Shown here piece after piece: positions 1-40,518 of a stretch of DNA of 64,000 bases. Below the pieces are notes generated by a model that saw only the letters and a program-made list of their open reading frames with translations, was not told the DNA's origin and made no database searches. The stretch is from IMG/VR virus record IMGVR_UViG_3300028676_000005, positions 1-64,000 of that record; one strand, 5' to 3'. How positions within the stretch are numbered: the first letter of the stretch is position 1; the number at the start of each line of letters is the position of its first letter. A program made the translations under genes and the position numbers.

Positions 1-885
1 GGTTACATACATTGCAGCAGTTACTGGTTGATACGAGAAGGAGAAAGTATCCTTGCCGCTCTTTTCCAGGATGGTGCTGTAACGGTTCGGTACCTTCATG
101 TACTCTGGAAAAGCGATATGCTTATATTTGTTCCAGACTTCCATGTAGGCAGCCGCTTCTTTCGAATCTTTGAAATGCCGCCGCCCTTCGCCCAGAAGAA
201 TGTAATCCATAATTCTGTCAGCGTTATGATAAAACGTGTTGATGTTGAACTCCGTGATTTCCAGAGTTTCAAACATCTTCTTCAAAACAATACCGGTCAT
301 GTTCTTGGTTTTGTTAACCAGTCGCCGGTAATCTTTATCCAGGAAGTACCACGGTACGCAGACCTTAGGGCTACCCAGGGTAATATTCTTAAAGAACGTT
401 GTCATAAAACCAATATGCACAAAACGTTCTACACCTTCTGGTGCCTTAAGCCAGAGCTTGGTGTCGTTACCTTTATTAAGGAACTTTTCTGGAGAGTCGC
501 CACAGCGGTCACACACTTGTGGGCGATCTTCTCTGACTCGGAAGTTACCGCGCAGTTTACCACAGGAACACTTAGCCACCGTTTCAAAGGTGTTACCCGT
601 AAACTCCATCCTGGTTAACCGGCCGAGTAGTTCTCGGTCTTCTTCCAGTTTGAGGTCCAGCTCGTTAAGGTAAATTGGCTTCAGCTTTGTAGTTGCATGC
701 AGGTAATCGTAATCTTCAAAGTCTGGATATAACGGTGCAGAATAACGAGGATCATCTCGAACTATACCACCAAAGGGTCTGGCGAATTTTTCGAAGTGAT
801 TAATAGGGTCCAGCCTTTCAAGACTAAGCGCTGTTAATACGTCAATAGCTCGTTGATTGGATGGGGTAATTTCTGGTAATTCCAT
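1..885 (-). CDS. Non-virion RNA polymerase beta' N-terminal subunit (phiKZ gp55-like), truncated by window edge
   Basis: Not in the ORF track. Manual translation from ATG at 885 (GGAG upstream) is open to base 1: MELPEITPSNQRAIDVLTAL...KCSCGKLRGN...VCDRCGD, a beta'-type Zn-binding CxC...CxxC. It lies directly downstream of chimallin, as in phiKZ-like phages. Confidence 0.8.
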   Translation of the reverse strand, partial: MELPEITPSNQRAIDVLTALSLERLDPINHFEKFARPFGGIVRDDPRYSAPLYPDFEDYDYLHATTKLKPIYLNELDLKLEEDRELLGRLTRMEFTGNTFETVAKCSCGKLRGNFRVREDRPQVCDRCGDSPEKFLNKGNDTKLWLKAPEGVERFVHIGFMTTFFKNITLGSPKVCVPWYFLDKDYRRLVNKTKNMTGIVLKKMFETLEITEFNINTFYHNADRIMDYILLGEGRRHFKDSKEAAAYMEVWNKYKHIAFPEYMKVPNRYSTILEKSGKDTFSFSYQPVTAAMYVT

Positions 886-971
886 TAACAGACTCCCATT
901 AAAACAAAAATAAAATAAAGACCAGGGAGGTATTACCCTCCCTAGTCTCTACTCAGTTACAGGCCGAGACC

Positions 972-3023
972 TTAGTATTGCGGGTTGAAGAAGTTCATCA
1001 TCTGAGCACCGCCACCCATGGCGTTGTTGCTGCCAGCAGTGTGCGTAGTAGCCAGGCCACCACCAGGAGCGAAGGCCAGCTTGTTGACGCGGAACGAACC
1101 GAGGTTGTTCGCGGAGTTCAGTTGACCGATGCCATCCATCGCGGCGCCCAGTACTGCCATGAAGTCAGGTGCCCACACAGCCGCGGTACCGAATGCGTTG
1201 ATGTGGTTGCGACCGTCGAACAGGGAAGAACCGTGCTCAACACGCAGCAGCTGAGAACGCTGTTTCACGTTCTGGTTTGCTTGCGAGCCGTAGACGATGC
1301 CCATGAAGTTTTCGATACCAGCTTTCGATGCAGCCGTCGCGCCTGGTTTGGCGTTGCAGATGTACATCTCGTCGACTTCGAGGGTGTTGATGTGACGCTC
1401 TTTGTCGTCCTTGCTCACCTGGCTGACTGCCAGACCGTTCACCACGATGGTGTTGGTACGGATCAGGATCGGCTTGCTTGGGTTCCAGCCGCGGCCGGTG
1501 GTGATGTTTTCCTGGATGATCTTCGAGAAGCGCTTCTTCGACATGGAGTCGATGAGTGCAACCACAACCTTGACTGCGTCTTGGTTGTTGACCGGATCGA
1601 GCAGGCGACGCATGAAACGAACGATCGGCGAATCGACACCGCTGTCGACCAGGTTGTACTTGAACGTTGCGTGTGGAGAAACGTTCTGGTGTACCCAGCT
1701 GGTAACGAAGTCGGTATCGTTGATGTTCTTTTCGTTCAGCGGAGCGCGCAGGGTTGGGTTGAGGATCGCCTGAGCATTTGGCATGCCAGCGATAACCATC
1801 TGGATACGAGTTTCCAGACCAGCCATGGAGCCACGGCCACCGACGTGCAGTTTACGCAGAGCATCAGCCCAGACGTACTGTTGGTTGGTGGTCATCAGCG
1901 TGTAGAGACCGAAGAAGATCGGGTACAGGCCGCCGTTGTTGTGCATCATTTCGCCAGCGGTTACGTTTTCGAGAGTGATCTCTGGACGCAGCGGACGGTA
2001 CGAGCCTTGGTAAATCGAGTTGTTCATCGAGTTACCGAACCAGCTACGCAGGTTGGTCATGTAGTCAGCAGACTGCGACAGTGCGAACTGCTGAGCCTGG
2101 TACTCTTCCCAGGTTACACCAGTCAGCGATACCGACGCAGTGATGCGGGCGATTTCGCGGGAGCTGTCGTTGTTCGGGTTGTAGTTGCCGTTGCCATTAC
2201 GGTTGTTGACGGTGGCTACCACAACTTCCATGTTGGCCGGGCTGAGGGTTTTGGCGTGGGTCACGCGGCCGGATACTGCTTGAACGCGAGCTTCAGCGGT
2301 GTTGTCTTTGCCGTACGGTGTTGCTGGTTCCAGCCATGGAGCTGGGATTTCGCGGCCAGCGGCGACGATCATGTTGGCACCGGTAACCAGCAGGGATTCT
2401 TCCCACTGACGAGCGGCGTACATGGCGATGTTGTGAGCCCAGTCTTTCTGATCGCCCGCTTCCGGGTGACCCAGCATTTCCATGTCCTGGACGAACAGGT
2501 TGATCACTTCGATGCCGGTGGCGCCGTTGGTTTGTGCAACACGGCCGTAGTGCTCTTTCAGCTTGGCGATGAACTGAGCGTTGACCTGAGCGGCCGGAGT
2601 CACTGGGATCGATACGCGTTGTTGCTGTGCGGTACCCTGGTTGACGTCGATGTGCTCGGTAGCGAAGCTGTTTTCGCGGTTAGAGAACAGCATGCCCATG
2701 ATGTACATGGTGCCGTCGAGTACGACGTAGAAGCCCAGGCCAGGCAACGCCGAGGAGATGGCAGAGGTCAGGTGTTCAACGGTCGGGATGATCTGACGCT
2801 GGTGTGCGTCGGTGGTCGATGTTTGGATGTTCTTGTAGATGCCTTCGGTCAGCACCTTGTAGACGTCGTCTACGATCTTCATGCCGCGGTTGTCGGCTAC
2901 CAGGGAGTTGACACGGAACAGACGATCCAGGATACCACCACCGGTGCTACCTTGTTGTTGAGCATTGTTGCCGTTGTTTTCCTGCCAGTTGTTGAATTCG
3001 TTGTTTTCAGTTTCCAGACCCAT
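972..3023 (-). CDS. chmA: Chimallin, major phage nucleus shell protein
   Basis: 683 aa with an N/Q-rich N-terminus followed by GSTGGGI. Colinear similarity to recalled 201phi2-1 gp105 segments (PANMEVVVATV, KPILIRTNTIVVNG, APDFMAVLGAAM). Flexible G/N-rich C-tail, strong codon bias, and position between DNA polymerase and nvRNAP beta'. Confidence 0.88.
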   Translation of the reverse strand: MGLETENNEFNNWQENNGNNAQQQGSTGGGILDRLFRVNSLVADNRGMKIVDDVYKVLTEGIYKNIQTSTTDAHQRQIIPTVEHLTSAISSALPGLGFYVVLDGTMYIMGMLFSNRENSFATEHIDVNQGTAQQQRVSIPVTPAAQVNAQFIAKLKEHYGRVAQTNGATGIEVINLFVQDMEMLGHPEAGDQKDWAHNIAMYAARQWEESLLVTGANMIVAAGREIPAPWLEPATPYGKDNTAEARVQAVSGRVTHAKTLSPANMEVVVATVNNRNGNGNYNPNNDSSREIARITASVSLTGVTWEEYQAQQFALSQSADYMTNLRSWFGNSMNNSIYQGSYRPLRPEITLENVTAGEMMHNNGGLYPIFFGLYTLMTTNQQYVWADALRKLHVGGRGSMAGLETRIQMVIAGMPNAQAILNPTLRAPLNEKNINDTDFVTSWVHQNVSPHATFKYNLVDSGVDSPIVRFMRRLLDPVNNQDAVKVVVALIDSMSKKRFSKIIQENITTGRGWNPSKPILIRTNTIVVNGLAVSQVSKDDKERHINTLEVDEMYICNAKPGATAASKAGIENFMGIVYGSQANQNVKQRSQLLRVEHGSSLFDGRNHINAFGTAAVWAPDFMAVLGAAMDGIGQLNSANNLGSFRVNKLAFAPGGGLATTHTAGSNNAMGGGAQMMNFFNPQY

Positions 3024-3109
3024 GATGCTTTTTCCTTATCTTCGAAGATAGTGTTTGTAACTAGCGGAATACCACAAGAATGAGATTATCATTACTGTGA
3101 TTCGTATTA

Positions 3110-9268: not shown

Positions 9269-9355
9269 AGTATCAGACCCTAGTTTAAAGTTAACAAAAA
9301 ACAGACATAAACTAAGAGCAGTGGCTAGTGCCACTGCTCTTATTTAGGCCTGGTG

Positions 9356-10372
9356 TTACAGGATCAAACCATTGGCGTTGGCATTGCTTGCTTCAACGGT
9401 GCGGCTGACGAAGGTACTGCTGGTCTGCGCTTTGCGTTTTTCCAGTTCCGCCAGTTGTTCGGTCAGCGTGGCTACGGACTCGCCGTGGTCCAGCAACATG
9501 TGCATTTGGTTTACGCCTTCTGGCAGGACAGTATTCGGAGAGAAGACACCAATCGAACGAACCACAGCGCCTTCAAAAGCAACAGTGATGTTTTCACGCT
9601 TGTCGTACAGGCTCAGGTGGGCAACAGGAGTCTTGCCTTTGAACTTGGCCGGCTCGTCATAGAACGAGATGTGCGACAGGGTTGGTGCAACCTTGTAGTT
9701 CTTGGAGTAGTCCAGAATTTCCAGCAGGTCGCTGATGTCTTGTTCTTCGTTTTCACGAGTGGCGTACAGCGAGAGGAGCGAGATCTTGTTGATCAGTGCG
9801 CGGTCAATCTGGCCGCGGGTCTTGCCTGCTTCGTTACGGAATTCCATATAAGGAATTGCGGCGTTCAGTAGGTTAGGCCCGGTTTGCAGCAGCAGGGAGT
9901 GAACGGTCTTCAGGGAGTTTTCCATTTCTACCTGGGTGGTGTGGTCAGTGATGATTGCTACGACCACGCCTTTGTAGCCTTGTTGCTTCAACCAACGCAC
10001 GGTCAACAGAGCCAGCATGGAACCAGAACCACCGGCACCGGAGCACAGAACCACAACTACGCCTTTAGGACGGTTTTGAGTCAGGGTCTGGTCAACGAAA
10101 GGAATTGCTTCCTCGTAGTTGGCGCCCATTACTTTGCCGGAGCCTTGTGCTTCTTTTTCATTTGGGGTGCCGCCCTTAGGAGCAGGTACGCGGAACAGAG
10201 GAATGTTCAGTTCTGGCTTCAGGCGATTGTTGCCGCTGGCGTCGATAGCGATGTAACTGGCATTGGTGACACTGGCGCTCAGACCGCTGGTCTTCAACAG
10301 CATTGCCATGTTGATACCGGCGCCGCCACATGCGATGAAGCTCAATTCGGAATTAACAACTTGATTAGACAT
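9356..10372 (-). CDS. phuZ: Phage tubulin PhuZ
   Basis: 338 aa. Tubulin/FtsZ GTPase motifs ACGGAGINM, GSGK and CSGAGGSGS. Size and location match phiKZ gp39. Confidence 0.92.
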   Translation of the reverse strand: MSNQVVNSELSFIACGGAGINMAMLLKTSGLSASVTNASYIAIDASGNNRLKPELNIPLFRVPAPKGGTPNEKEAQGSGKVMGANYEEAIPFVDQTLTQNRPKGVVVVLCSGAGGSGSMLALLTVRWLKQQGYKGVVVAIITDHTTQVEMENSLKTVHSLLLQTGPNLLNAAIPYMEFRNEAGKTRGQIDRALINKISLLSLYATRENEEQDISDLLEILDYSKNYKVAPTLSHISFYDEPAKFKGKTPVAHLSLYDKRENITVAFEGAVVRSIGVFSPNTVLPEGVNQMHMLLDHGESVATLTEQLAELEKRKAQTSSTFVSRTVEASNANANGLIL

Positions 10373-10439
10373 GTGCCACTCTCTTCTACTGGGTTAAAAA
10401 AATCTTTAGAGAACTATTCTCTACTGTTATTACAAAGTA

Positions 10440-10448
10440 GTAATATAG
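10440..10448 (-). promoter_or_regulatory. Early promoter motif CTATATTAC upstream of phuZ
   Basis: Exact 9-mer repeated at four intergenic sites, all on the minus strand ahead of genes; contains the phiKZ early TATTAC core. Confidence 0.7.
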
Positions 10449-10496
10449 AGCCAAAAAGTTTTTGACTCCTATAATTAGTTGATACAGTTAAAATGC

Positions 10497-10543
10497 AAAA
10501 AAAAGCCTCGTTCTCAGAACCCGATTAAAGGTCTGAGACGAGG
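10497..10543 (-). terminator. Rho-independent terminator closing the RNA island
   Basis: CCTCGTCTCAGA...TCTGAGAACGAGG hairpin followed by T8 on the minus strand. Confidence 0.75.
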
Positions 10544-10544
10544 G

Positions 10545-10860
10545 TGGAGTATCAAACGGTTACAAACTCTTGTACTTAAACAAGAGGCAGGAATATAAAC
10601 ACCAGGCCTTTCGTTATGTGCCAGTATATTCGCGGTTCGCAATACCGGTGGTTCACAAAAGGTCTGGCGGGAAGTTTTCATTGGTCTTTTTACATCGACC
10701 AGCAACCAACAAGCCTTGGGAGGTACCCGTTGGTTGGCTACAAAGGACTTCCTAACCTCTACAGCAAGCGACAAACACCAGGCGAAAAGAGACGTCCAAC
10801 TGACATCTCCGCAAACAGTGAAGGATGGCACTGTTTACTTACACGGCCGCTAGACCATGT
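10545..10860 (-). ncRNA. Putative structured non-coding RNA domain (hairpin series)
   Basis: Consecutive hairpins on the minus strand: GTAAACAGTG/CACTGTTTGC, GAGATGTC/GACGTCTC, GTAGCCAAC/GTTGGTTGC, CTCTTGT/ACAAGAG. No credible ORF. Confidence 0.45.
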
Positions 10861-10956
10861 TGGGTGGAAGACTGGATGGATTCGAACCACCGACCAGCGA
10901 GGAGGGTAAATGATACCCGAGGACTCCCCGTTCTAACCAACTGAACTACAGTCTTC
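10861..10956 (-). ncRNA. tRNA-like RNA A with extended anticodon arm (22-nt 'loop' folding into GGGTA/TACCC with a TCATT tip)
   Basis: Acceptor AAGACTG/CAGTCTT plus G-1:C73. D arm GTTC-AGTTGGTTA-GAAC. T arm GGTGG-TTCGAAT-CCATC. 15 extra nt in the anticodon arm. 3' end CCACCCA. Confidence 0.75.
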
Positions 10957-10961
10957 ACATT

Positions 10962-11050
10962 TGGGGGAAAGGGCAGGACTTGAACCTACGACCTCCGAAC
11001 AAAGGCATGACCATTCGCACGGTGCTCTAACCAACTGAGCTACAGTTCCC
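10962..11050 (-). ncRNA. tRNA-like RNA B with extended anticodon arm (18-nt 'loop', TCATG tip)
   Basis: Acceptor GGAACTG/CCTTTCC (2 mismatches) plus G-1:C73 and encoded CCA. D arm GCTC-AGTTGGTTA-GAGC. T arm GTAGG-TTCAAGT-CCTGC. 11 extra nt in the anticodon arm. Confidence 0.75.
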
Positions 11051-11206
11051 ATAAATCTTGACTCGTTTACATGTGATTGGTTGTCACACGCATACTTTCT
11101 GAGGGCACGAGGCACCACCCATTTGGCGAACACACCAGTAACCCACCACAGGCCCCAACATGTCGTTTATCAGAAAGTTTCATCACCCATTGCTAGGTAA
11201 AGAAAA

Positions 11207-11282
11207 TGGCTCCGCGACCTGGACTCGAACCAGGGACCAACAGATTAACAGTCTGCTGCTCTACCAACTGAGCTATCGCGGA
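11207..11282 (-). tRNA. trnN: tRNA-Asn (GTT)
   Basis: Canonical 76-nt cloverleaf, loop CT-GTT-AA, perfect acceptor stem, G73-CCA. Confidence 0.97.
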
Positions 11283-11414
11283 ATGTAGCAGAAATCATTA
11301 GACATGTCTTAGGACTTTTACCCCACGTTTTTATCAAGGGCCGACTGCCTAGGCGCCCTGCGTGTTTTCTTTCTTTACCAGATTACCTTGATCACGGGGT
11401 CTGATAAAACAATG

Positions 11415-11490
11415 TGGCGGCGTAGCCAGGAGTCGAACCTGGAACCTTCGGTTTTGGAGACCGATGCTCTGCCAGTTGAGCTACTAGGCC
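11415..11490 (-). tRNA. trnW: tRNA-Trp (CCA)
   Basis: 76-nt cloverleaf, loop CT-CCA-AA, G73-CCA, C4.C69 mismatch. Confidence 0.95.
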
Positions 11491-11502
11491 TAATCTAAAT
11501 CT

Positions 11503-11586
11503 TGGGCGTCATTGGGTTCTTACCACGGGCCTTCAGCGGTGACCGACGACCAGGTCACACCCACGTTCTTCAGCCGAAGCAACGAC
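11503..11586 (-). ncRNA. ~80-nt stem-loop RNA with an acceptor-like terminus
   Basis: Closing stem GTCGTTG/CAATGAC followed by G-CCCA. Inner stems CTTCGGC/GCTGAAG and GTGACC/GGTCAC. G.U pairs form only on the minus strand. Confidence 0.5.
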
Positions 11587-11595
11587 TAAATCTTG

Positions 11596-11895
11596 AAATT
11601 GAATCCGTTAGCTATTATCAGGGTAGGAGACTGCCCGGTTACCAAGCCTGATAATAACTGAGTCACCTAGTCACGGAAAACAACGTAGGTAACTGCCAGG
11701 ACACCCCTGGCTGGTGTAACAGAGTTAATCCCCCGACTCCCATCTGTTACTTAACACGAACCACCAGCGTCATGGGTCAGTGTTAACATTTGAATTCAGG
11801 TAGGTCTACAGACTTTTACTGTACGTCATGAGTAACAGACCGGCCTCCAGATCTGTAACGGTTTTCTTCAGGGCGCAGGGCAGCGGCTAGAATAA
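11596..11895 (-). ncRNA. Putative structured ncRNA domain (large-loop hairpin series)
   Basis: Hairpins at 11611-11658, 11716-11750, ~11751-11796 and 11832-11859. No ORF. Confidence 0.5.
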
Positions 11896-12016
11896 GGTAG
11901 AGAGTGTGGGATTCGAACCCACGGGAGCAAGCTCACAGCCGGTTTCAAAGCCACCGCGCGGAAGACCGTACCGCAACTAATCCACCAGCCTCCTTCAACC
12001 ACTCGGACAACTCTCC
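11896..12016 (-). tRNA. tRNA-Ser(TGA)-like gene with a 35-nt insertion at position 31/32 or 32/33; no encoded CCA
   Basis: Acceptor GGAGAGT/ACTCTCT, Ser-type D arm TCCGAGTGGTTGAAGGA, anticodon stem GCTGG/CCGGC, long variable arm and T arm GTGGG-TTCGAAT-CCCAC. The 42-nt loop ends TTTGAAA. Confidence 0.7.
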
Positions 12017-12370
12017 AGAAACAAGATCCGTTCGCCATGACTGCAAGAAGGCGGATAACCGTCTACCAGCAATATGTTCTTACTTTCCCGTAGCCACGGA
12101 TAACAGCGGACCGAATACCCTGGAACAACATGAATGGGTACTGGATCAGCACGGGAAAGACCTCATGCGAGGTGGGTCGTCAAGGCTACTCTAGGAGTGC
12201 GTCGACTATCGAGCCAGCGACCAGGCCGGCTAATGAACGGGTCATCCCCGTTTATCCAGTTACAGGTGCCGTGAATGGGGACCTGTAACCAAATTTGTAT
12301 TAGAGTAGGGACATTATCCTTAGTCTCTTCGAAGGGCCCTCCGCAGATTGCACCCAAGACTGTATACTAA
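12017..12370 (-). ncRNA. Putative structured ncRNA domain
   Basis: Stems GTTACAGGT/ACCTGTAAC, AACGGG/CCCGTT, AGCCGGC/GCTGGCT, ACCTC/GAGGT and long-range CTTTCCCGT/ACGGGAAAG. Confidence 0.5.
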
Positions 12371-12378
12371 CCACCCAA

Positions 12379-12432
12379 TGTGTCGTGAGGGACTCGAACC
12401 CTACATGCCGCTATGGCGACAGAACCCAACCT
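12379..12432 (-). pseudogene. 3' half of a class II (Leu-like) tRNA
   Basis: Variable arm TGTCGC-CATA-GCGGCA, T arm AGGG-TTCGAGT-CCCT and acceptor 3' strand ACGACAC. No matching D arm or 5' acceptor strand upstream. Confidence 0.55.
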
Positions 12433-12484
12433 ACGCATTGATGATCTGACTTACCTGCCCGAGGAGACTAAGGTAAATCAAATA

Positions 12485-12561
12485 TGGCGCAACCAAGGGG
12501 ACTCGAACCCCTGACCACCCGCGTGACAGGCGGGTATTCTAACCAACTGAACTATGGGTGC
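12485..12561 (-). tRNA. trnD: tRNA-Asp (GTC)
   Basis: 77-nt cloverleaf, loop CT-GTC-AC, G73-CCA, C4.T69 mismatch. Confidence 0.96.
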
Positions 12562-12574
12562 TTTGTATAACATA
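12561..12574 (-). promoter_or_regulatory. Late-type promoter/leader TATGTTATACAAAG (copy 1, ending at G1 of tRNA-Asp)
   Basis: Exact 14-bp repeat of 13119-13132. Begins with TATG, the phiKZ nvRNAP late promoter core. Confidence 0.6.
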
Positions 12575-13119
12575 GTAAATCGGGACGAAGTCGATATGAG
12601 TTCTACTCTCATACTCTCTACAAGTGATCGAAGTCACTAGCAGTCTGGATCGCCCTTCATCATCGGCTTTTCATCCTTAAGCGCAGTAAACCCTGACGAC
12701 CGTTAGGCTAGAGGGAACCCACATTGCCCAGGTTTATCCAGATACCATGGAACCCATGGATTCTTTTTCAACACCGTCATATAACAGTGTCGAGTAATAA
12801 GTTAAGGAGAGGTCGCAGACGTGAACCACGGTCCTCTCCTGACCTTGAGACTATGATAAGGGCGGCGCCGCCGATATCACGTAACAAGCCGCCTCACTTT
12901 GTCAGTAGCCAGCCCGCGTGCTTTGCCGCAGAAGCGGCTCCCGCGAAACTGGTCTGTAGTAGACTTAGTGTGACTAAGAGTCTTGACGGGACTCCCATAG
13001 GGTTTTGATAAGAGCGCCTGTCACAGCTAACCCCGACCATCATAATTCATCCGGCACCACCCTTAAGGCTCCGAACAGTTTCCCCAAAGGGAAATTCCGC
13101 GAGATCATTTACTGGTCTC
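12575..13119 (-). ncRNA. Putative ~545-nt structured non-coding RNA
   Basis: No credible ORF. At least eight hairpins. Starts after the same 14-nt promoter/leader as tRNA-Asp. Confidence 0.55.
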
Positions 13120-13132
13120 TTTGTATAACATA
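13119..13132 (-). promoter_or_regulatory. Late-type promoter/leader TATGTTATACAAAG (copy 2)
   Basis: Exact repeat of 12561-12574 at the 5' edge of the RNA island. Confidence 0.6.
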
Positions 13133-13139
13133 ACAACTC

Positions 13140-14900
13140 TCAGTTTTCTTCTACCAGCGCAAACACAAATTCACCTTCTGATTGATGCACATTCCAGACA
13201 GTTTGCGTTTTAGGTGGGTAGACGTCAGTCTTGCCGAGTGGAGTAACCATTGCGGGAAACTCCATCATGTGCTGCGCGGTAGATATCTTGACCGTGTCAG
13301 TATAAGAACCAGCACCACAAGTAGTCGTAACTCGCACATCGGCTCTGAGAAGCCCTTTAACGTGATCTATTACAAATGCTTTGAACTTATCAAGCCCTTC
13401 TTCAGTAAGGTTGTTTGCAATACCTACAGGGATGTTATCAAGCTTGTCAAGCAAAACTTGTTTCATTTGATCGGTATTGGGGGTTGCTGTTAATACTGCT
13501 TTCGAATCTGCATCAACTTCATCAAAAACAATTTTACCACCGTCGAGAGCATAGACCTTAAAATAGGTCTTGCTTGCTGCTGGCTTAAGTTCTCCGCCAA
13601 GGATGGCCACGTGTGTAGGTGGCAATTCAACAACGCGGTGTGCTGTGTCGAGAGTAACCTGAACGAGATACCCGTTAACATCCGGGGTTACTTTAACAAG
13701 TATGTTTCCCTCAAATGGTTTATAGATCGTGTCGCCAATAGCATTTGTAAGTATTACAAGAGAACTCTTACTCAGCGTGGCGGTTATTTCACTAGGGATA
13801 TCAATTTTGTAATGAGGTTTTTCAATTTCCTCAACACCAGCCAATTGAACTCCGGTGCTTACTGACAACGAGGGTCCTTTCAAAGCATCAACAATGCCTG
13901 AAACAGACGTTTGCGCCGCACTAAGGGTTTCCATAAATTGAGGATGTGCCTCGTAAAAACGTTTACGAGCTAAGGCTGTTTGGTAATAGTCACTCTGTGC
14001 CGTATTATCCAGAGAAAGTTTAGTGAGGATCACAGCGCCCTTATCGCGGTAAACTCCGAAAACACTGTAATCACCCATACCAATATAGGCTTTAAGATCG
14101 GCAGGCAAAAAGTCTTTTGGTGTCATTGTTTTGCCAGGGTAATATGCCGTGCAGCTATATTTGTCATTATCAGCCGCCACTACCAAAACACTGGACAACA
14201 AATTACTAACAATCTCTGGGGTATGGACAATAACAAATGTAACATCTGGGTCATCTGTTAACTGTTTTTCACAAGCTTCTAAAGACTCGGGCGATAATAC
14301 TTCTTCTATTGCGCCGAGGGCTTCCTTGGAATTAAGAAACCAAGGTTTGCCTACTTCAGTTACCGTAATGGTCTTTGACTCAGGATTGTACTTTTCTGCG
14401 TTCTCTTTAAGCAGTGTAAGAAAGACATAAGAAACCAGCTTGGTCTTACGCAATTGTTCAATAATCTCGTCACTGGCATAAACACCATACTCACGCACTA
14501 GCGATGGAGCGATGCAGTAGAACGGGTAGAAGTCCAGTCCGATAAAAGCACCAAACTCAGCACCACGATGCTGCTCTTCCATTTTTTCTGGTTTGAAAAT
14601 GGGAGTACCTGCGATTACGTCTACCGTTTTCTCGGCATAGGTAATCGGTTTGATTGGCTCGGGTGTCCCAACCTTGGTCAGGGCCTTATAATCGATCTTC
14701 GAGATGGTATCACCCTTCTCGTTCATGATCCACGCATCATTGGCGATGATGTGTTTAGAGGGTGGGTTGCTAACCGTAAGTACGGGAACGCCACCCAAGT
14801 CTGGATCAGAGGCAATCACTTGGATGTTGACGGGATCTACCGCAGTGAGGAGCCGGAAGCTTACACCGTCTTTCAAGAGCATCTTTACATGTACAGTCAT
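13140..14900 (-). CDS. Hypothetical protein; N-terminal domain belongs to the local paralog family
   Basis: 586-aa ORF with AGGA RBS. Confidence 0.8.
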   Translation of the reverse strand: MTVHVKMLLKDGVSFRLLTAVDPVNIQVIASDPDLGGVPVLTVSNPPSKHIIANDAWIMNEKGDTISKIDYKALTKVGTPEPIKPITYAEKTVDVIAGTPIFKPEKMEEQHRGAEFGAFIGLDFYPFYCIAPSLVREYGVYASDEIIEQLRKTKLVSYVFLTLLKENAEKYNPESKTITVTEVGKPWFLNSKEALGAIEEVLSPESLEACEKQLTDDPDVTFVIVHTPEIVSNLLSSVLVVAADNDKYSCTAYYPGKTMTPKDFLPADLKAYIGMGDYSVFGVYRDKGAVILTKLSLDNTAQSDYYQTALARKRFYEAHPQFMETLSAAQTSVSGIVDALKGPSLSVSTGVQLAGVEEIEKPHYKIDIPSEITATLSKSSLVILTNAIGDTIYKPFEGNILVKVTPDVNGYLVQVTLDTAHRVVELPPTHVAILGGELKPAASKTYFKVYALDGGKIVFDEVDADSKAVLTATPNTDQMKQVLLDKLDNIPVGIANNLTEEGLDKFKAFVIDHVKGLLRADVRVTTTCGAGSYTDTVKISTAQHMMEFPAMVTPLGKTDVYPPKTQTVWNVHQSEGEFVFALVEEN

Positions 14901-17547: not shown

Positions 17548-17556
17548 GTAATATAG
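17548..17556 (-). promoter_or_regulatory. Early promoter motif CTATATTAC
   Basis: Exact copy, ~110 bp upstream of the HslV-like gene. Confidence 0.7.
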
Positions 17557-35931: not shown

Positions 35932-35940
35932 GTAATATAG
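35932..35940 (-). promoter_or_regulatory. Early promoter motif CTATATTAC
   Basis: Exact copy, 30 bp upstream of the 145-aa ORF. Confidence 0.7.
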
Positions 35941-40509: not shown

Positions 40510-40518
40510 GTAATATAG
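40510..40518 (-). promoter_or_regulatory. Early promoter motif CTATATTAC
   Basis: Exact copy, ~100 bp upstream of 40409. Confidence 0.7.

Follow-up and report, generated by a model that had tools for sequence, protein, structure and literature searches.

A 2.6-kb stretch of an uncultured nucleus-forming jumbo phage that has no credible coding sequence appears, on sequence evidence alone, to be a conserved operon encoding only RNA. It carries three canonical tRNAs, three tRNA-like bodies that lack a 7-nt anticodon loop, and at least four large, predicted structured RNAs that match no RNA family in Rfam 15. The stretch occupies positions 13132-10497, on the minus strand, of the 64,000-nucleotide sequence that we analyzed (hereafter, the window), taken from IMG/VR record IMGVR_UViG_3300028676_000005.

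A first-pass annotation, made from the sequence alone, had described this region as a gene-free island with three normal tRNAs, three enlarged tRNA bodies and a half-tRNA, almost all of whose spacers fold. We confirmed this observation, although single-sequence folding of the spacers was confirmed only in part. The accompanying interpretation, that a single promoter-to-terminator precursor is cut by tRNA-processing enzymes into tRNAs and unknown phage RNAs, is partly supported.

Content and boundaries of the island

The elements that we recognize, in the order of the minus strand, are as follows.

13123..13132 (-): promoter-like motif P1 (TATGTTATAC), about 5 nt upstream of D1
12793..13118 (-): D1, about 325-nt structured RNA, always the first element of the island
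12768..12792 (-): short hairpin between D1 and D2, with no T-run after it
12576..12770 (-): D2, about 195-nt structured RNA ending at the second promoter motif
12565..12574 (-): promoter-like motif P2 (TATGTTATAC), 4 nt upstream of tRNA-Asp
12485..12561 (-): tRNA-Asp(GUC), canonical, CCA encoded
12296..12484 (-): D3, degenerate class-II tRNA-like remnant (about 12468-12379, the half-tRNA) plus a tail
12018..12295 (-): D4, about 280-nt structured RNA that directly abuts the 5' end of TX
11896..12017 (-): TX, class-II tRNA-like RNA with a 7-bp acceptor, D-arm, T-arm, and expanded anticodon and variable arms
11503..11895 (-): D5, composite of module M copy a (11870-11801), a subclade-specific core (11800-11575) and module M copy b (11573-11505)
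11415..11490 (-): tRNA-Trp(CCA), canonical
11283..11414 (-): D6, spacer holding module M copy c (11371-11303), a repeated ~70-nt leader module
11207..11282 (-): tRNA-Asn(GUU), canonical
11050..11206 (-): D7, about 157-nt spacer domain that abuts TL1
10965..11049 (-): TL1, tRNA-like RNA with a long hairpin in place of the anticodon stem-loop, CCA encoded
10867..10955 (-): TL2, second tRNA-like RNA of the same family
10544..10866 (-): D8, about 320-nt structured RNA that starts at the 3' end of the preceding tRNA or TL in every locus
10497..10543 (-): intrinsic terminator, hairpin 10543-10506, then T8 at 10504-10497

The three canonical tRNAs were called by ARAGORN with anticodons GTT, CCA and GTC, and score 72.3 (Asn), 66.7 (Trp) and 64.8 (Asp) bits against an Rfam gathering score of 29 for tRNA (RF00005). 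The tRNA-Asp is 97% identical to phiKZ tRNA-Asp, and the tRNA-Asn is 100% identical to that of Pseudomonas phage pPa_SNUABM_DT01. TL1 and TL2 also pass the gathering score, at 40.4 and 44.1 bits, but carry 22 and 26 nt where the model has 11, and across 11 TLs this arm is a 9-13-bp helix with variable 5-10-nt loops. TX has a 30-50-nt insert, and ARAGORN can call it only by assuming "introns" of 35-61 nt, with inconsistent anticodons. Thus, none of the three has the 5-bp stem and 7-nt loop that present an anticodon. The half-tRNA comprises a T-arm and a poor acceptor (5/7), and was found by ARAGORN only at a lowered threshold.

In searches of window positions 10200-13400, and of positions 1-3100 of a relative's locus (L024; loci from relatives are numbered in this way), only tRNA matched Rfam 15 above its gathering score. 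Non-tRNA matches fall far below their gathering scores, with E from 0.03 to 2.4 in the window and from 0.002 to 6.5 in L024, where the best lie antisense to tRNAs. GOLLD and ROOL give no match at E<=10 in either sequence. GOLLD, ROOL, tmRNA, RNase P and group I or II introns are excluded, and there is likewise no qualifying match to 6S, SRP or riboswitches. No tmRNA was found by ARAGORN at default settings; lowered-threshold permuted calls have non-canonical, unidentified tags.

We also considered whether some spacers encode small proteins. The longest stop-to-stop segments are 106-109 aa, and L013 carries a called 82-aa ORF with a ribosome-binding site, inserted between D5 and tRNA-Asn. However, this ORF is absent from the window, and none of the open segments in the window has a Pfam hit. 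Searches with tblastn against distant islands give only short hits, in several frames and on both strands over the same nucleotides, and no frame is conserved. Indels between close relatives are 1-2 nt and substitutions show no 3-nt periodicity, whereas phuZ in the same genomes shows 3-nt indels and third-position bias. We regard it as very unlikely that some spacers encode small proteins or micropeptides.

The first-pass annotation placed one TATG promoter at the 5' edge and a T8 terminator at the 3' edge. In fact there are two promoter-like motifs: TATGTTATAC has only two exact copies in the 64-kb window, and both are in the island. P1 is conserved in L001, L013 and L025, whereas the variant CATTATATACAAC occupies the same place in distant relatives. 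P2 is conserved in relatives, where the same motif sits 4-12 nt upstream of tRNA-Asp or TX. The phiKZ late promoter is TATG with the start at G (PMC4666361). However, TATG itself is not conserved, being replaced by CATT upstream of D1 in distant relatives, so assignment of the promoter to the late (nvRNAP) class is not established. The terminator hairpin folds at -21.3 kcal/mol, its stem shows compensatory changes in L015, and the motif TTTTTTGCA ends the island in all loci. A simple terminator scan missed this hairpin because of its long loop. The island is not one simple promoter-to-terminator unit, given the second promoter motif and given that in L018, D1 is a stand-alone unit with its own terminator.

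Conservation and covariation of the RNA domains

We retrieved about 13 distinct syntenic islands from relatives whose PhuZ is 49-93% identical. Gene-free islands of 1.6-3 kb lie upstream of phuZ in all relatives fetched, a clade of chimalliviruses. The same RNA domains recur in the same order and only on this strand, with no hits elsewhere in 300 kb searched, while the tRNA cassettes between them vary.

The first-pass annotation had named folding no better than dinucleotide-shuffled controls as evidence against it, and this comparison gave mixed results. MFE z-scores for the single sequence are -6.9 for D8, -3.1 for D4, -2.5 for D1, -2.0 for D5 and -1.7 for D7, but are near 0 for D2, D3, D6, TX, TL1 and TL2. 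Comparative evidence is much stronger. All tested domains fold better on the minus strand, and 10-22% of paired cells are G.U.

D1 is found in 15 loci, of which 13 are distinct. RNAalifold on 11 sequences gives 55 pairs, 32 with compensatory changes, and in a column-shuffle control z is -11, with 39 compensatory pairs against 10.8+-4.6. D2 is present in nine loci, eight of them distinct, and with six sequences z is -7.6, with 21 compensatory pairs against 5.1+-2.4. It is absent from L001 and L013, which have a hairpin of different sequence in the place of the short hairpin between D1 and D2. D4 has matches in 13 loci, several of them only partial, and with five sequences z is -6.5; however, its compensatory pairs are only marginally above shuffles (28 against 19.2). 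In D8, the invariant 5' hairpin and long-range helices covary, and in the distant group z is -5.8, with 29 compensatory pairs against 9.8+-3.5. D8 is 94% identical between the window and L001, against 87.5% for phuZ.

Support is weaker for D5 and D7, and absent for D3, each of which rests on three sequences. The D5 core is 93% identical in the window, L001 and L013, which exceeds the identity of phuZ in the same genome pairs, and has a z of -3.9 with only three compensatory pairs. D7 has homologues only in L024 and L022, with a z of -3.2, and folds far better on the minus strand (-71.8 against -48.6). D3 has homologues only in L013 and L024, and its conserved structure is not significant (z=-1.0). 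D6 is essentially one copy of module M. A model of this module, R2, finds 24 copies, one to three per island and on the island strand only, mostly ending 10-20 nt upstream of a tRNA or tRNA-like 5' end. The 3' hairpin of the module, with loop UAAAAGU, covaries. Not every spacer is therefore an independent folded domain.

The tRNA-like bodies retain an acceptor stem, D-arm and T-arm with GTTCRA loop, and these are maintained by covariation. A covariance model of TX, R1, finds 13 copies (12 distinct), one per island, at 98-147 bits; the next best hits are the phage tRNA-Ser(GCU) at 51-64 bits and tRNA-Tyr at 52 bits. In TX, 97.5% of cells are paired and 17 of 30 pairs are compensatory. A model of the TL family, R3, scores TL1 at 91.7 and TL2 at 89.6 bits, and in this family 93.4% of cells are paired and 18 of 22 pairs are compensatory. 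In both families, 0 of 500 shuffles reach the observed values.

These data bear on the possibility that the island is a decaying tRNA array whose spacers and enlarged bodies are pseudogene debris and neutral DNA left by gain and loss of tRNA cassettes. In its favor, tRNA content differs widely between islands, D3 looks like a degenerate class-II tRNA without supported structure, TX and TL are most similar to the phage's own tRNA-Ser, tRNA-Tyr and tRNA-Asp, and homing endonuclease ORFs sit in some islands. However, D1, D2, D4, D8, TX and TL persist across relatives whose PhuZ is only 49-60% identical, with many compensatory changes (few above the control in D4), D8 and the D5 core are more conserved than phuZ at the nucleotide level, and domain order is fixed. 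We consider this explanation unlikely.

It is similarly improbable that the large domains are self-splicing or mobile elements, such as group I or II introns or endonuclease-associated guide RNAs, that invaded a tRNA cluster. HNH_3/NUMOD4 ORFs do lie inside the islands of L021 and L025, T4 has segB inside its tRNA cluster, and the modular presence and absence of D2, D3 and D7 resembles mobility. However, no intron, HEARO or other mobile-element RNA family matches at E<=10 in the island or in L024, the window and most islands carry no endonuclease ORF, the domains lie between tRNAs and not within them, and D1 and D8 are fixed at the two ends of every island.

Finally, the conserved elements might act as DNA, for example as an origin, a packaging site or protein-binding sites, or as cis-regulatory leaders for phuZ rather than as trans-acting RNAs. 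The fixed position immediately upstream of phuZ in all relatives and a G+C content higher than that of the flanks are consistent with this view. However, a terminator and then a separate early-type promoter (CTATATTAC) lie between D8 and phuZ, helices contain 10-22% G.U pairs and fold clearly worse on the complementary strand, and the covariation preserves RNA pairing, not sequence. We give this reading little weight.

Putative roles of a probable noncoding RNA operon

We favor the explanation that the island is a dedicated noncoding RNA operon of an uncultured chimallivirus clade, to which we assign a probability of roughly 0.6. The analysis itself establishes a minus-strand unit bounded by phage-type promoter-like motifs at 13132 and 12574 and one intrinsic terminator at about 10500. 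It also establishes that this unit encodes three decoding tRNAs, two families of non-decoding tRNA mimics (TX, derived from a class-II tRNA, and TL, from a class-I tRNA) in which a long helix replaces the anticodon loop, at least four large structured RNAs (D1, D2, D4 and D8, with the reservation noted for D4) of no described family, and module M 10-20 nt upstream of most tRNA or tRNA-like 5' ends. All are conserved in order and structure while tRNA cassettes come and go.

By contrast, transcription, processing, stability and function are inferred, as the phage is known only from metagenomes. We propose that the precursor is cut at the tRNA and tRNA-like bodies by host RNase P and 3'-end enzymes, which would release D1, D2, D4, D5, D7 and D8 as separate stable RNAs. 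This proposal rests on geometry alone: structured domains abut tRNA or tRNA-like ends within 0-15 nt, and at 0-1 nt for D4 and TX, D7 and TL1, and TL2 and D8, as a tRNA-punctuated precursor predicts.

Although nothing points to any particular function, our best guess is that the products act in the host cytoplasm on the tRNA and translation apparatus. The anticodon-less mimics would be handles for processing or decoys for tRNA-binding host factors, and the large RNAs would be scaffolds of the GOLLD/ROOL kind. A more far-reaching hypothesis, which we consider doubtful but not excluded, is that D1 and D8 (and perhaps D2 and D4) are new classes of large ornate phage RNAs comparable to GOLLD and ROOL, that TX and TL are purpose-built tRNA mimics without anticodons, and that together they form an RNA-only counter-defence or host-takeover module of a nucleus-forming phage. 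For example, the mimics might titrate or misdirect host tRNA-targeting nucleases and tRNA-binding factors in the cytoplasm, while also serving as RNase P handles that release the large RNAs. The link to the phage nucleus suggested in the first-pass annotation is speculation.

Large structured RNAs with no known function are rare, and each new class has opened new biochemistry. This single locus supplies four RNAs of 200-330 nt, two families of anticodon-less tRNA mimics and a repeated leader module, with the covariation support described above and all confined to a clade of nucleus-forming jumbo phages. It makes directly testable whether phages use tRNA-shaped elements as processing punctuation for other RNAs, what non-decoding tRNA mimics do during infection, and whether phage RNAs of the GOLLD/ROOL type work together with tRNA clusters. 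D1 and D8 are compact, strongly conserved targets for cryo-EM.

Comparison with known systems

Bacterial Y RNA-like YrlA (RF02553) and the tRNA-like domains of tmRNA are non-decoding RNAs that mimic the tRNA acceptor/T-arm and replace the anticodon arm with another helix. However, YrlA matches reach only 18-21 bits against a gathering score of 69, and YrlA is permuted, with its ends in the Ro-binding stem.

MALAT1/mascRNA and mitochondrial tRNA punctuation also involve structured RNAs that directly abut tRNA or tRNA-like bodies, such that RNase P or 3'-end cleavage at the tRNA-like element would define the ends of the neighboring RNA. Those systems are eukaryotic or organellar, whereas processing here is only inferred, and bacterial 3' maturation uses RNase E plus exonucleases rather than RNase Z for tRNAs with encoded CCA.

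GOLLD and ROOL (RF01998, RF03087) are large (>300 nt), intricately folded noncoding RNAs of unknown function that are often encoded by phages or prophages next to tRNA genes (for context, see 10.1101/2024.12.08.627333). D1 and D8 are shorter than GOLLD (about 800 nt), their helices and conserved motifs are unrelated, and several different RNAs are chained in one operon.

The closest precedent is the bacteriophage T4 tRNA gene cluster, with its stable RNAs rnaC (species 1) and rnaD (species 2). What is new in the island is the RNA families, not this kind of arrangement. In T4, too, a tRNA cluster is co-linear with small stable RNAs of unknown function, and a homing endonuclease gene sits inside it. 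T4 precursors are matured by host RNase P and 3' enzymes. There is no sequence or model homology: R1 matches only the T-loop of rnaC, at 10.8 bits, nhmmer profiles of the D domains, TX and module M find nothing in the T4 cluster, and the TL profile hits only T4's own tRNAs. Also, the non-tRNA part of the island is much larger, about 2 kb with at least four RNAs of 200-330 nt, and dominates the locus. Nevertheless, rnaC folds with a T-arm and an acceptor-like closing stem plus expanded hairpins, so it is a tRNA-like body without an anticodon loop, and the long-unexplained T4 rnaC and rnaD may belong to the same functional theme.

Elements of the island and its noncoding character

The window is part of a 229-kb IMG/VR contig (UViG_3300028676_000005) of an uncultured chimallivirus. 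Its PhuZ is at most 37% identical to any PhuZ in INPHARED, and chimallin lies nearby. The region of interest lies between the stop codon of a 586-aa gene (13140) and the phuZ promoter. Three canonical tRNAs were identified by ARAGORN, and searches with Rfam added two tRNA-like bodies that score above the tRNA gathering score, but whose anticodon regions hold more nucleotides than the 11 in the model. A third enlarged body gave only a weak tRNA-Sec-like hit in Rfam, and ARAGORN required a 37-nt "intron" to call it. The elements are as follows, where D1 is the first of the spacer domains (D1 to D8), TX and TL denote two families of tRNA-like RNAs, and M is a repeated module.

9356-10372, minus strand: phuZ
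10867-10955, minus strand: TL2, tRNA-like body with 26 nt in the anticodon region
10965-11049, minus strand: TL1, tRNA-like body with 22 nt in the anticodon region
11207-11282, minus strand: tRNA-Asn
11303-11371, minus strand: module M
11415-11490, minus strand: tRNA-Trp
11505-11573, minus strand: module M
11801-11870, minus strand: module M, copy a
11896-12017, minus strand: TX, the third enlarged tRNA-like body
about 12379-12468, minus strand: degenerate T-arm/acceptor remnant
12485-12561, minus strand: tRNA-Asp
12793-13118, minus strand: D1
13140-14900, minus strand: the 586-aa gene upstream of the island

The remnant at about 12468-12379 corresponds to what the first-pass annotation had called a half-tRNA. 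No other Rfam 15 family comes anywhere near its gathering score in listings at E<=10, either in the window or in a distant relative, and GOLLD, ROOL, tmRNA, RNase P RNA and introns are therefore excluded as identities. When the ARAGORN threshold was lowered, permuted tmRNAs were called, but we rejected these predictions because their tags are noncanonical and because they are supported neither by ARAGORN at default settings nor by Rfam.

The region is noncoding. The longest open segments are 106-109 aa, and none has a Pfam hit. Translated searches against distant islands give only short hits, which occur in several frames and on both strands over the same nucleotides, as is the signature of nucleotide-level conservation. 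Between close relatives, the domains differ by 1-2-nt indels, and substitutions are evenly spread over the three phases, whereas phuZ in the same genome pairs has only 3-nt indels and a strong third-position excess. D8 is 94% identical between the window and L001 (the contig of a relative whose PhuZ is 93% identical), and the D5 core is 93% identical. By comparison, phuZ is 87.5% identical at the nucleotide level, and the 586-aa protein is only 66% identical at the amino-acid level. The 586-aa gene also has no tblastn match in 50,697 phage records, so it is a fast-evolving orphan gene.

Relatives, domain order and predicted structures

Searches of INPHARED with the island by using megablast and blastn found only the tRNAs. 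The tRNA-Asn is 100% identical to that of Pseudomonas phage pPa_SNUABM_DT01, and the tRNA-Asp is 97% identical to that of phiKZ, although the rest of the phage has no nucleotide match in INPHARED. This hints at a Pseudomonas-like host or at exchange of tRNA cassettes. Pattern scans of IMG/VR with D4 and D5 motifs returned only the contig that carries the window, a near-identical one and L001. A scan of genome contigs returned one chance match inside a coding region of an Acidobacteriota metagenome-assembled genome (L031), which we discarded. However, a protein search with PhuZ returned a graded series of relatives from 93% down to 40% identity, from which the encoding contigs of those from 91% down to 49% were retrieved, and a D8 motif scan of IMG/VR added more contigs.

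Every relative has a gene-free island of 1.6-3 kb upstream of phuZ on the same strand, and profile searches show that the domains of the window recur only in these islands and only on the island strand. The order is conserved: promoter motif, D1, (tRNA-Leu), D2, promoter motif, (tRNA-Asp) or TX, D4, variable tRNAs with module M, tRNA-Asn, TL, D8, terminator, early-type promoter and phuZ. The tRNA cassettes (Leu, Asp, Tyr, Ser, Trp, Gln, Asn) come and go, but the structured domains stay. Protein-coding insertions occur within some islands. In the relative L013, an 82-aa ORF with a ribosome-binding site lies between D5 and tRNA-Asn (L013:3841-4089), and in the relative L018, a 282-aa gene lies between D1 and tRNA-Leu (L018:7529-8377).

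Covariation was assessed with L-INS-i alignments and conservation-preserving column shuffles. Because such alignments disregard structure, the variable regions of D8 and module M are aligned without regard to it, and their pair counts are underestimates. For D1, RNAalifold on 11 sequences at 57% mean identity predicts 55 pairs, of which 32 have compensatory changes. In the shuffling analysis, z is -11, with 39 compensatory pairs against 10.8+-4.6. We considered a pseudoknot in D1 between the loop UUAAGG and a 3' CCUUAA, but rejected it because changes in the tail in the relatives L021, L022 and L025 are not compensated. D2 has a z of -7.6, with 21 compensatory pairs against 5.1, and D4 has a z of -6.5, though its compensatory count is only marginally above the control. 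D8 exhibits an invariant 5' hairpin, a covarying long-range helix and a covarying inner hairpin, and in the distant group, z is -5.8, with 29 compensatory pairs against 9.8. D5 and D7 have z of -3.9 and -3.2, but with only three sequences each, and D3 is not significant.

Some sequence elements recur among the domains. D2 and D4 both open with CUGGAUAAAC and close with GAUCCAG (12736-12743 and 12645-12652 in D2; 12255-12262 and 12146-12153 in D4), so they share a closing helix, although their profiles do not cross-match. UCUAGC..CGGCCGU also recurs in D2 and in the invariant 5' hairpin of D8. The GGAAGUCC...ACUUCC helix of D8 resembles P4 of RNase P, and anti-Shine-Dalgarno-like CCUCC tracts are present, but we dropped both ideas because no RNase P model matches and because the tracts lie inside helices.

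The first-pass annotation had proposed that almost every spacer folds into closed stems. On single sequences, minimum free energy z-scores support this claim only for D8 (-6.9), D4 (-3.1), D1 (-2.5) and, marginally, D5 and D7. Every tested domain folds better on the minus strand than on its complement, and 10-22% of paired cells are G.U, which confirms the strand. A segment of phuZ that was included only as a control in the folding test (9700-10049) folds unusually well on its antisense, plus strand (z=-4.0 against shuffles). This segment is G+C-rich (0.53), with long antisense open frames at 9353-9871 and 9884-10465.

TX, as searched with covariance model R1, is present in one copy per island, at 98-147 bits, and the next best hits are the phages' own tRNA-Ser(GCU) and tRNA-Tyr. 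It keeps a 7-bp acceptor, a class-II D-arm and the T-arm, but its anticodon arm is a two-part helix with a variable 30-50-nt tip, and its variable arm is a long hairpin. In TX, 97.5% of cells are paired and 17 of 30 pairs are compensatory, and none of 500 shuffles and no slid control comes close. TL, as searched with model R3, has 11 copies in 9 islands, two of them in the window, at 69-92 bits, and the next best hit is tRNA-Asp. Its anticodon stem-loop is replaced by a 9-13-bp hairpin with nonconserved loops, 93.4% of cells are paired, and 18 of 22 pairs are compensatory. The TL1 subfamily (TL1 itself, L001:2914-2997, L015:174-257 and L020:9329-9412) keeps two pyrimidine-pyrimidine mismatches at positions 5 and 6 of the acceptor stem in all four members, whereas other TLs have perfect acceptor stems. 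Neither family can present a conserved anticodon, so they are tRNA mimics, not decoders.

Module M is a repeated element of ~70 nt that consists of AAAGAAAAC, a hairpin with a GG..GUCGG loop and then a hairpin with a UAAAAGU loop. It occurs three times in the window and 24 times overall. Most copies end 10-20 nt upstream of a tRNA or tRNA-like 5' end, though copy a in the window and those in L018 and L021 do not. The model used for this module (R2) captured only 7 pairs, and so was useful for counting copies but not for structure.

Transcription signals and inferred processing

The motif TATGTTATAC occurs exactly twice in 64 kb, and both occurrences are in the island. In relatives, the same motif lies 4-12 nt upstream of tRNA-Asp or TX, and after the D8 terminator ahead of an extra small RNA unit. 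Upstream of D1, however, the distant relatives have CATTATATACAAC instead. The conserved core is therefore TATACAA rather than the TATG to which the first-pass annotation had attributed the promoter. In phiKZ, the late nvRNAP promoter is TATG with the start at G (PMC4666361); the motif here is promoter-like, without an assigned class.

The 3' edge is a strong hairpin plus T8, with compensatory changes in the relative L015. It is followed by CTATATTAC, an early-type motif that is found 4 times in the window (10440-10448, 17548-17556, 35932-35940 and 40510-40518, all on the minus strand), against 0.27 expected by chance. This motif resembles the phiKZ-type early promoter core, and the copy at 10440-10448 precedes phuZ. 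The extra small transcription unit in distant relatives lies between the D8 terminator and the phuZ promoter (L016:9705-9874, L022:6397-6571, L024:2790-2947, L020:9816-9900 and L023:8508-8650). It consists of a CATGTTATAC or TATGTTATAC motif, an RNA of about 150 nt containing a T-loop-like GGGTTCG and, in most, a second terminator, and is lacking in the window and its close relatives. In L018, D1 has its own terminator and is separated from the rest by the inserted protein gene. D1 is therefore an autonomous RNA gene.

D4 ends where TX begins, D7 ends where TL1 begins, and D8 begins at the 3' end of TL2, or of tRNA-Asn or tRNA-Gln in relatives. This is the geometry of tRNA-punctuated processing, in which RNase P cutting 5' of each tRNA-shaped body, and 3' maturation behind it, would release the structured RNAs. 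The observation that this region is an island of tRNAs and folded noncoding domains holds: the feature is real, conserved and structured. The first-pass interpretation is only partly supported: the comparative analysis supports conservation and order, and structure for D1, D2, D4, D8, TX and TL, whereas the cutting of a precursor into tRNAs and phage RNAs by tRNA-processing enzymes is inferred from the geometry. As to biologic role, our best guess, held with low confidence, is that the RNAs act on the host tRNA and translation apparatus, with the mimics as decoys or handles and the large RNAs as scaffolds.

Comparison with known phage RNAs

Literature searches found no description of these RNAs. 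The nearest cultured relatives by PhuZ (FishSpeaker and RisingSun) have no island, no tRNAs near phuZ and no profile hits. GOLLD and ROOL are analogous in being large, ornate and tRNA-adjacent, but they are not related to the RNAs in the island. The closest precedent is the T4 tRNA cluster, which carries rnaC and rnaD, stable RNAs of unknown function, and the segB homing endonuclease (L032:1754-2419 in the T4 sequence examined). HNH_3/NUMOD4 homing-endonuclease ORFs that are inserted inside the RNA islands of two relatives (L021:8872-9378 and L025:5134-5919) echo this arrangement. rnaC folds as a tRNA-like body with a T-arm and expanded arms, but there is no homology between the T4 RNAs and TX, TL or the D domains. 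The island thus consists of several new RNA families in a setting that is already known, namely a phage tRNA cluster with companion RNAs, but on an unusual scale.
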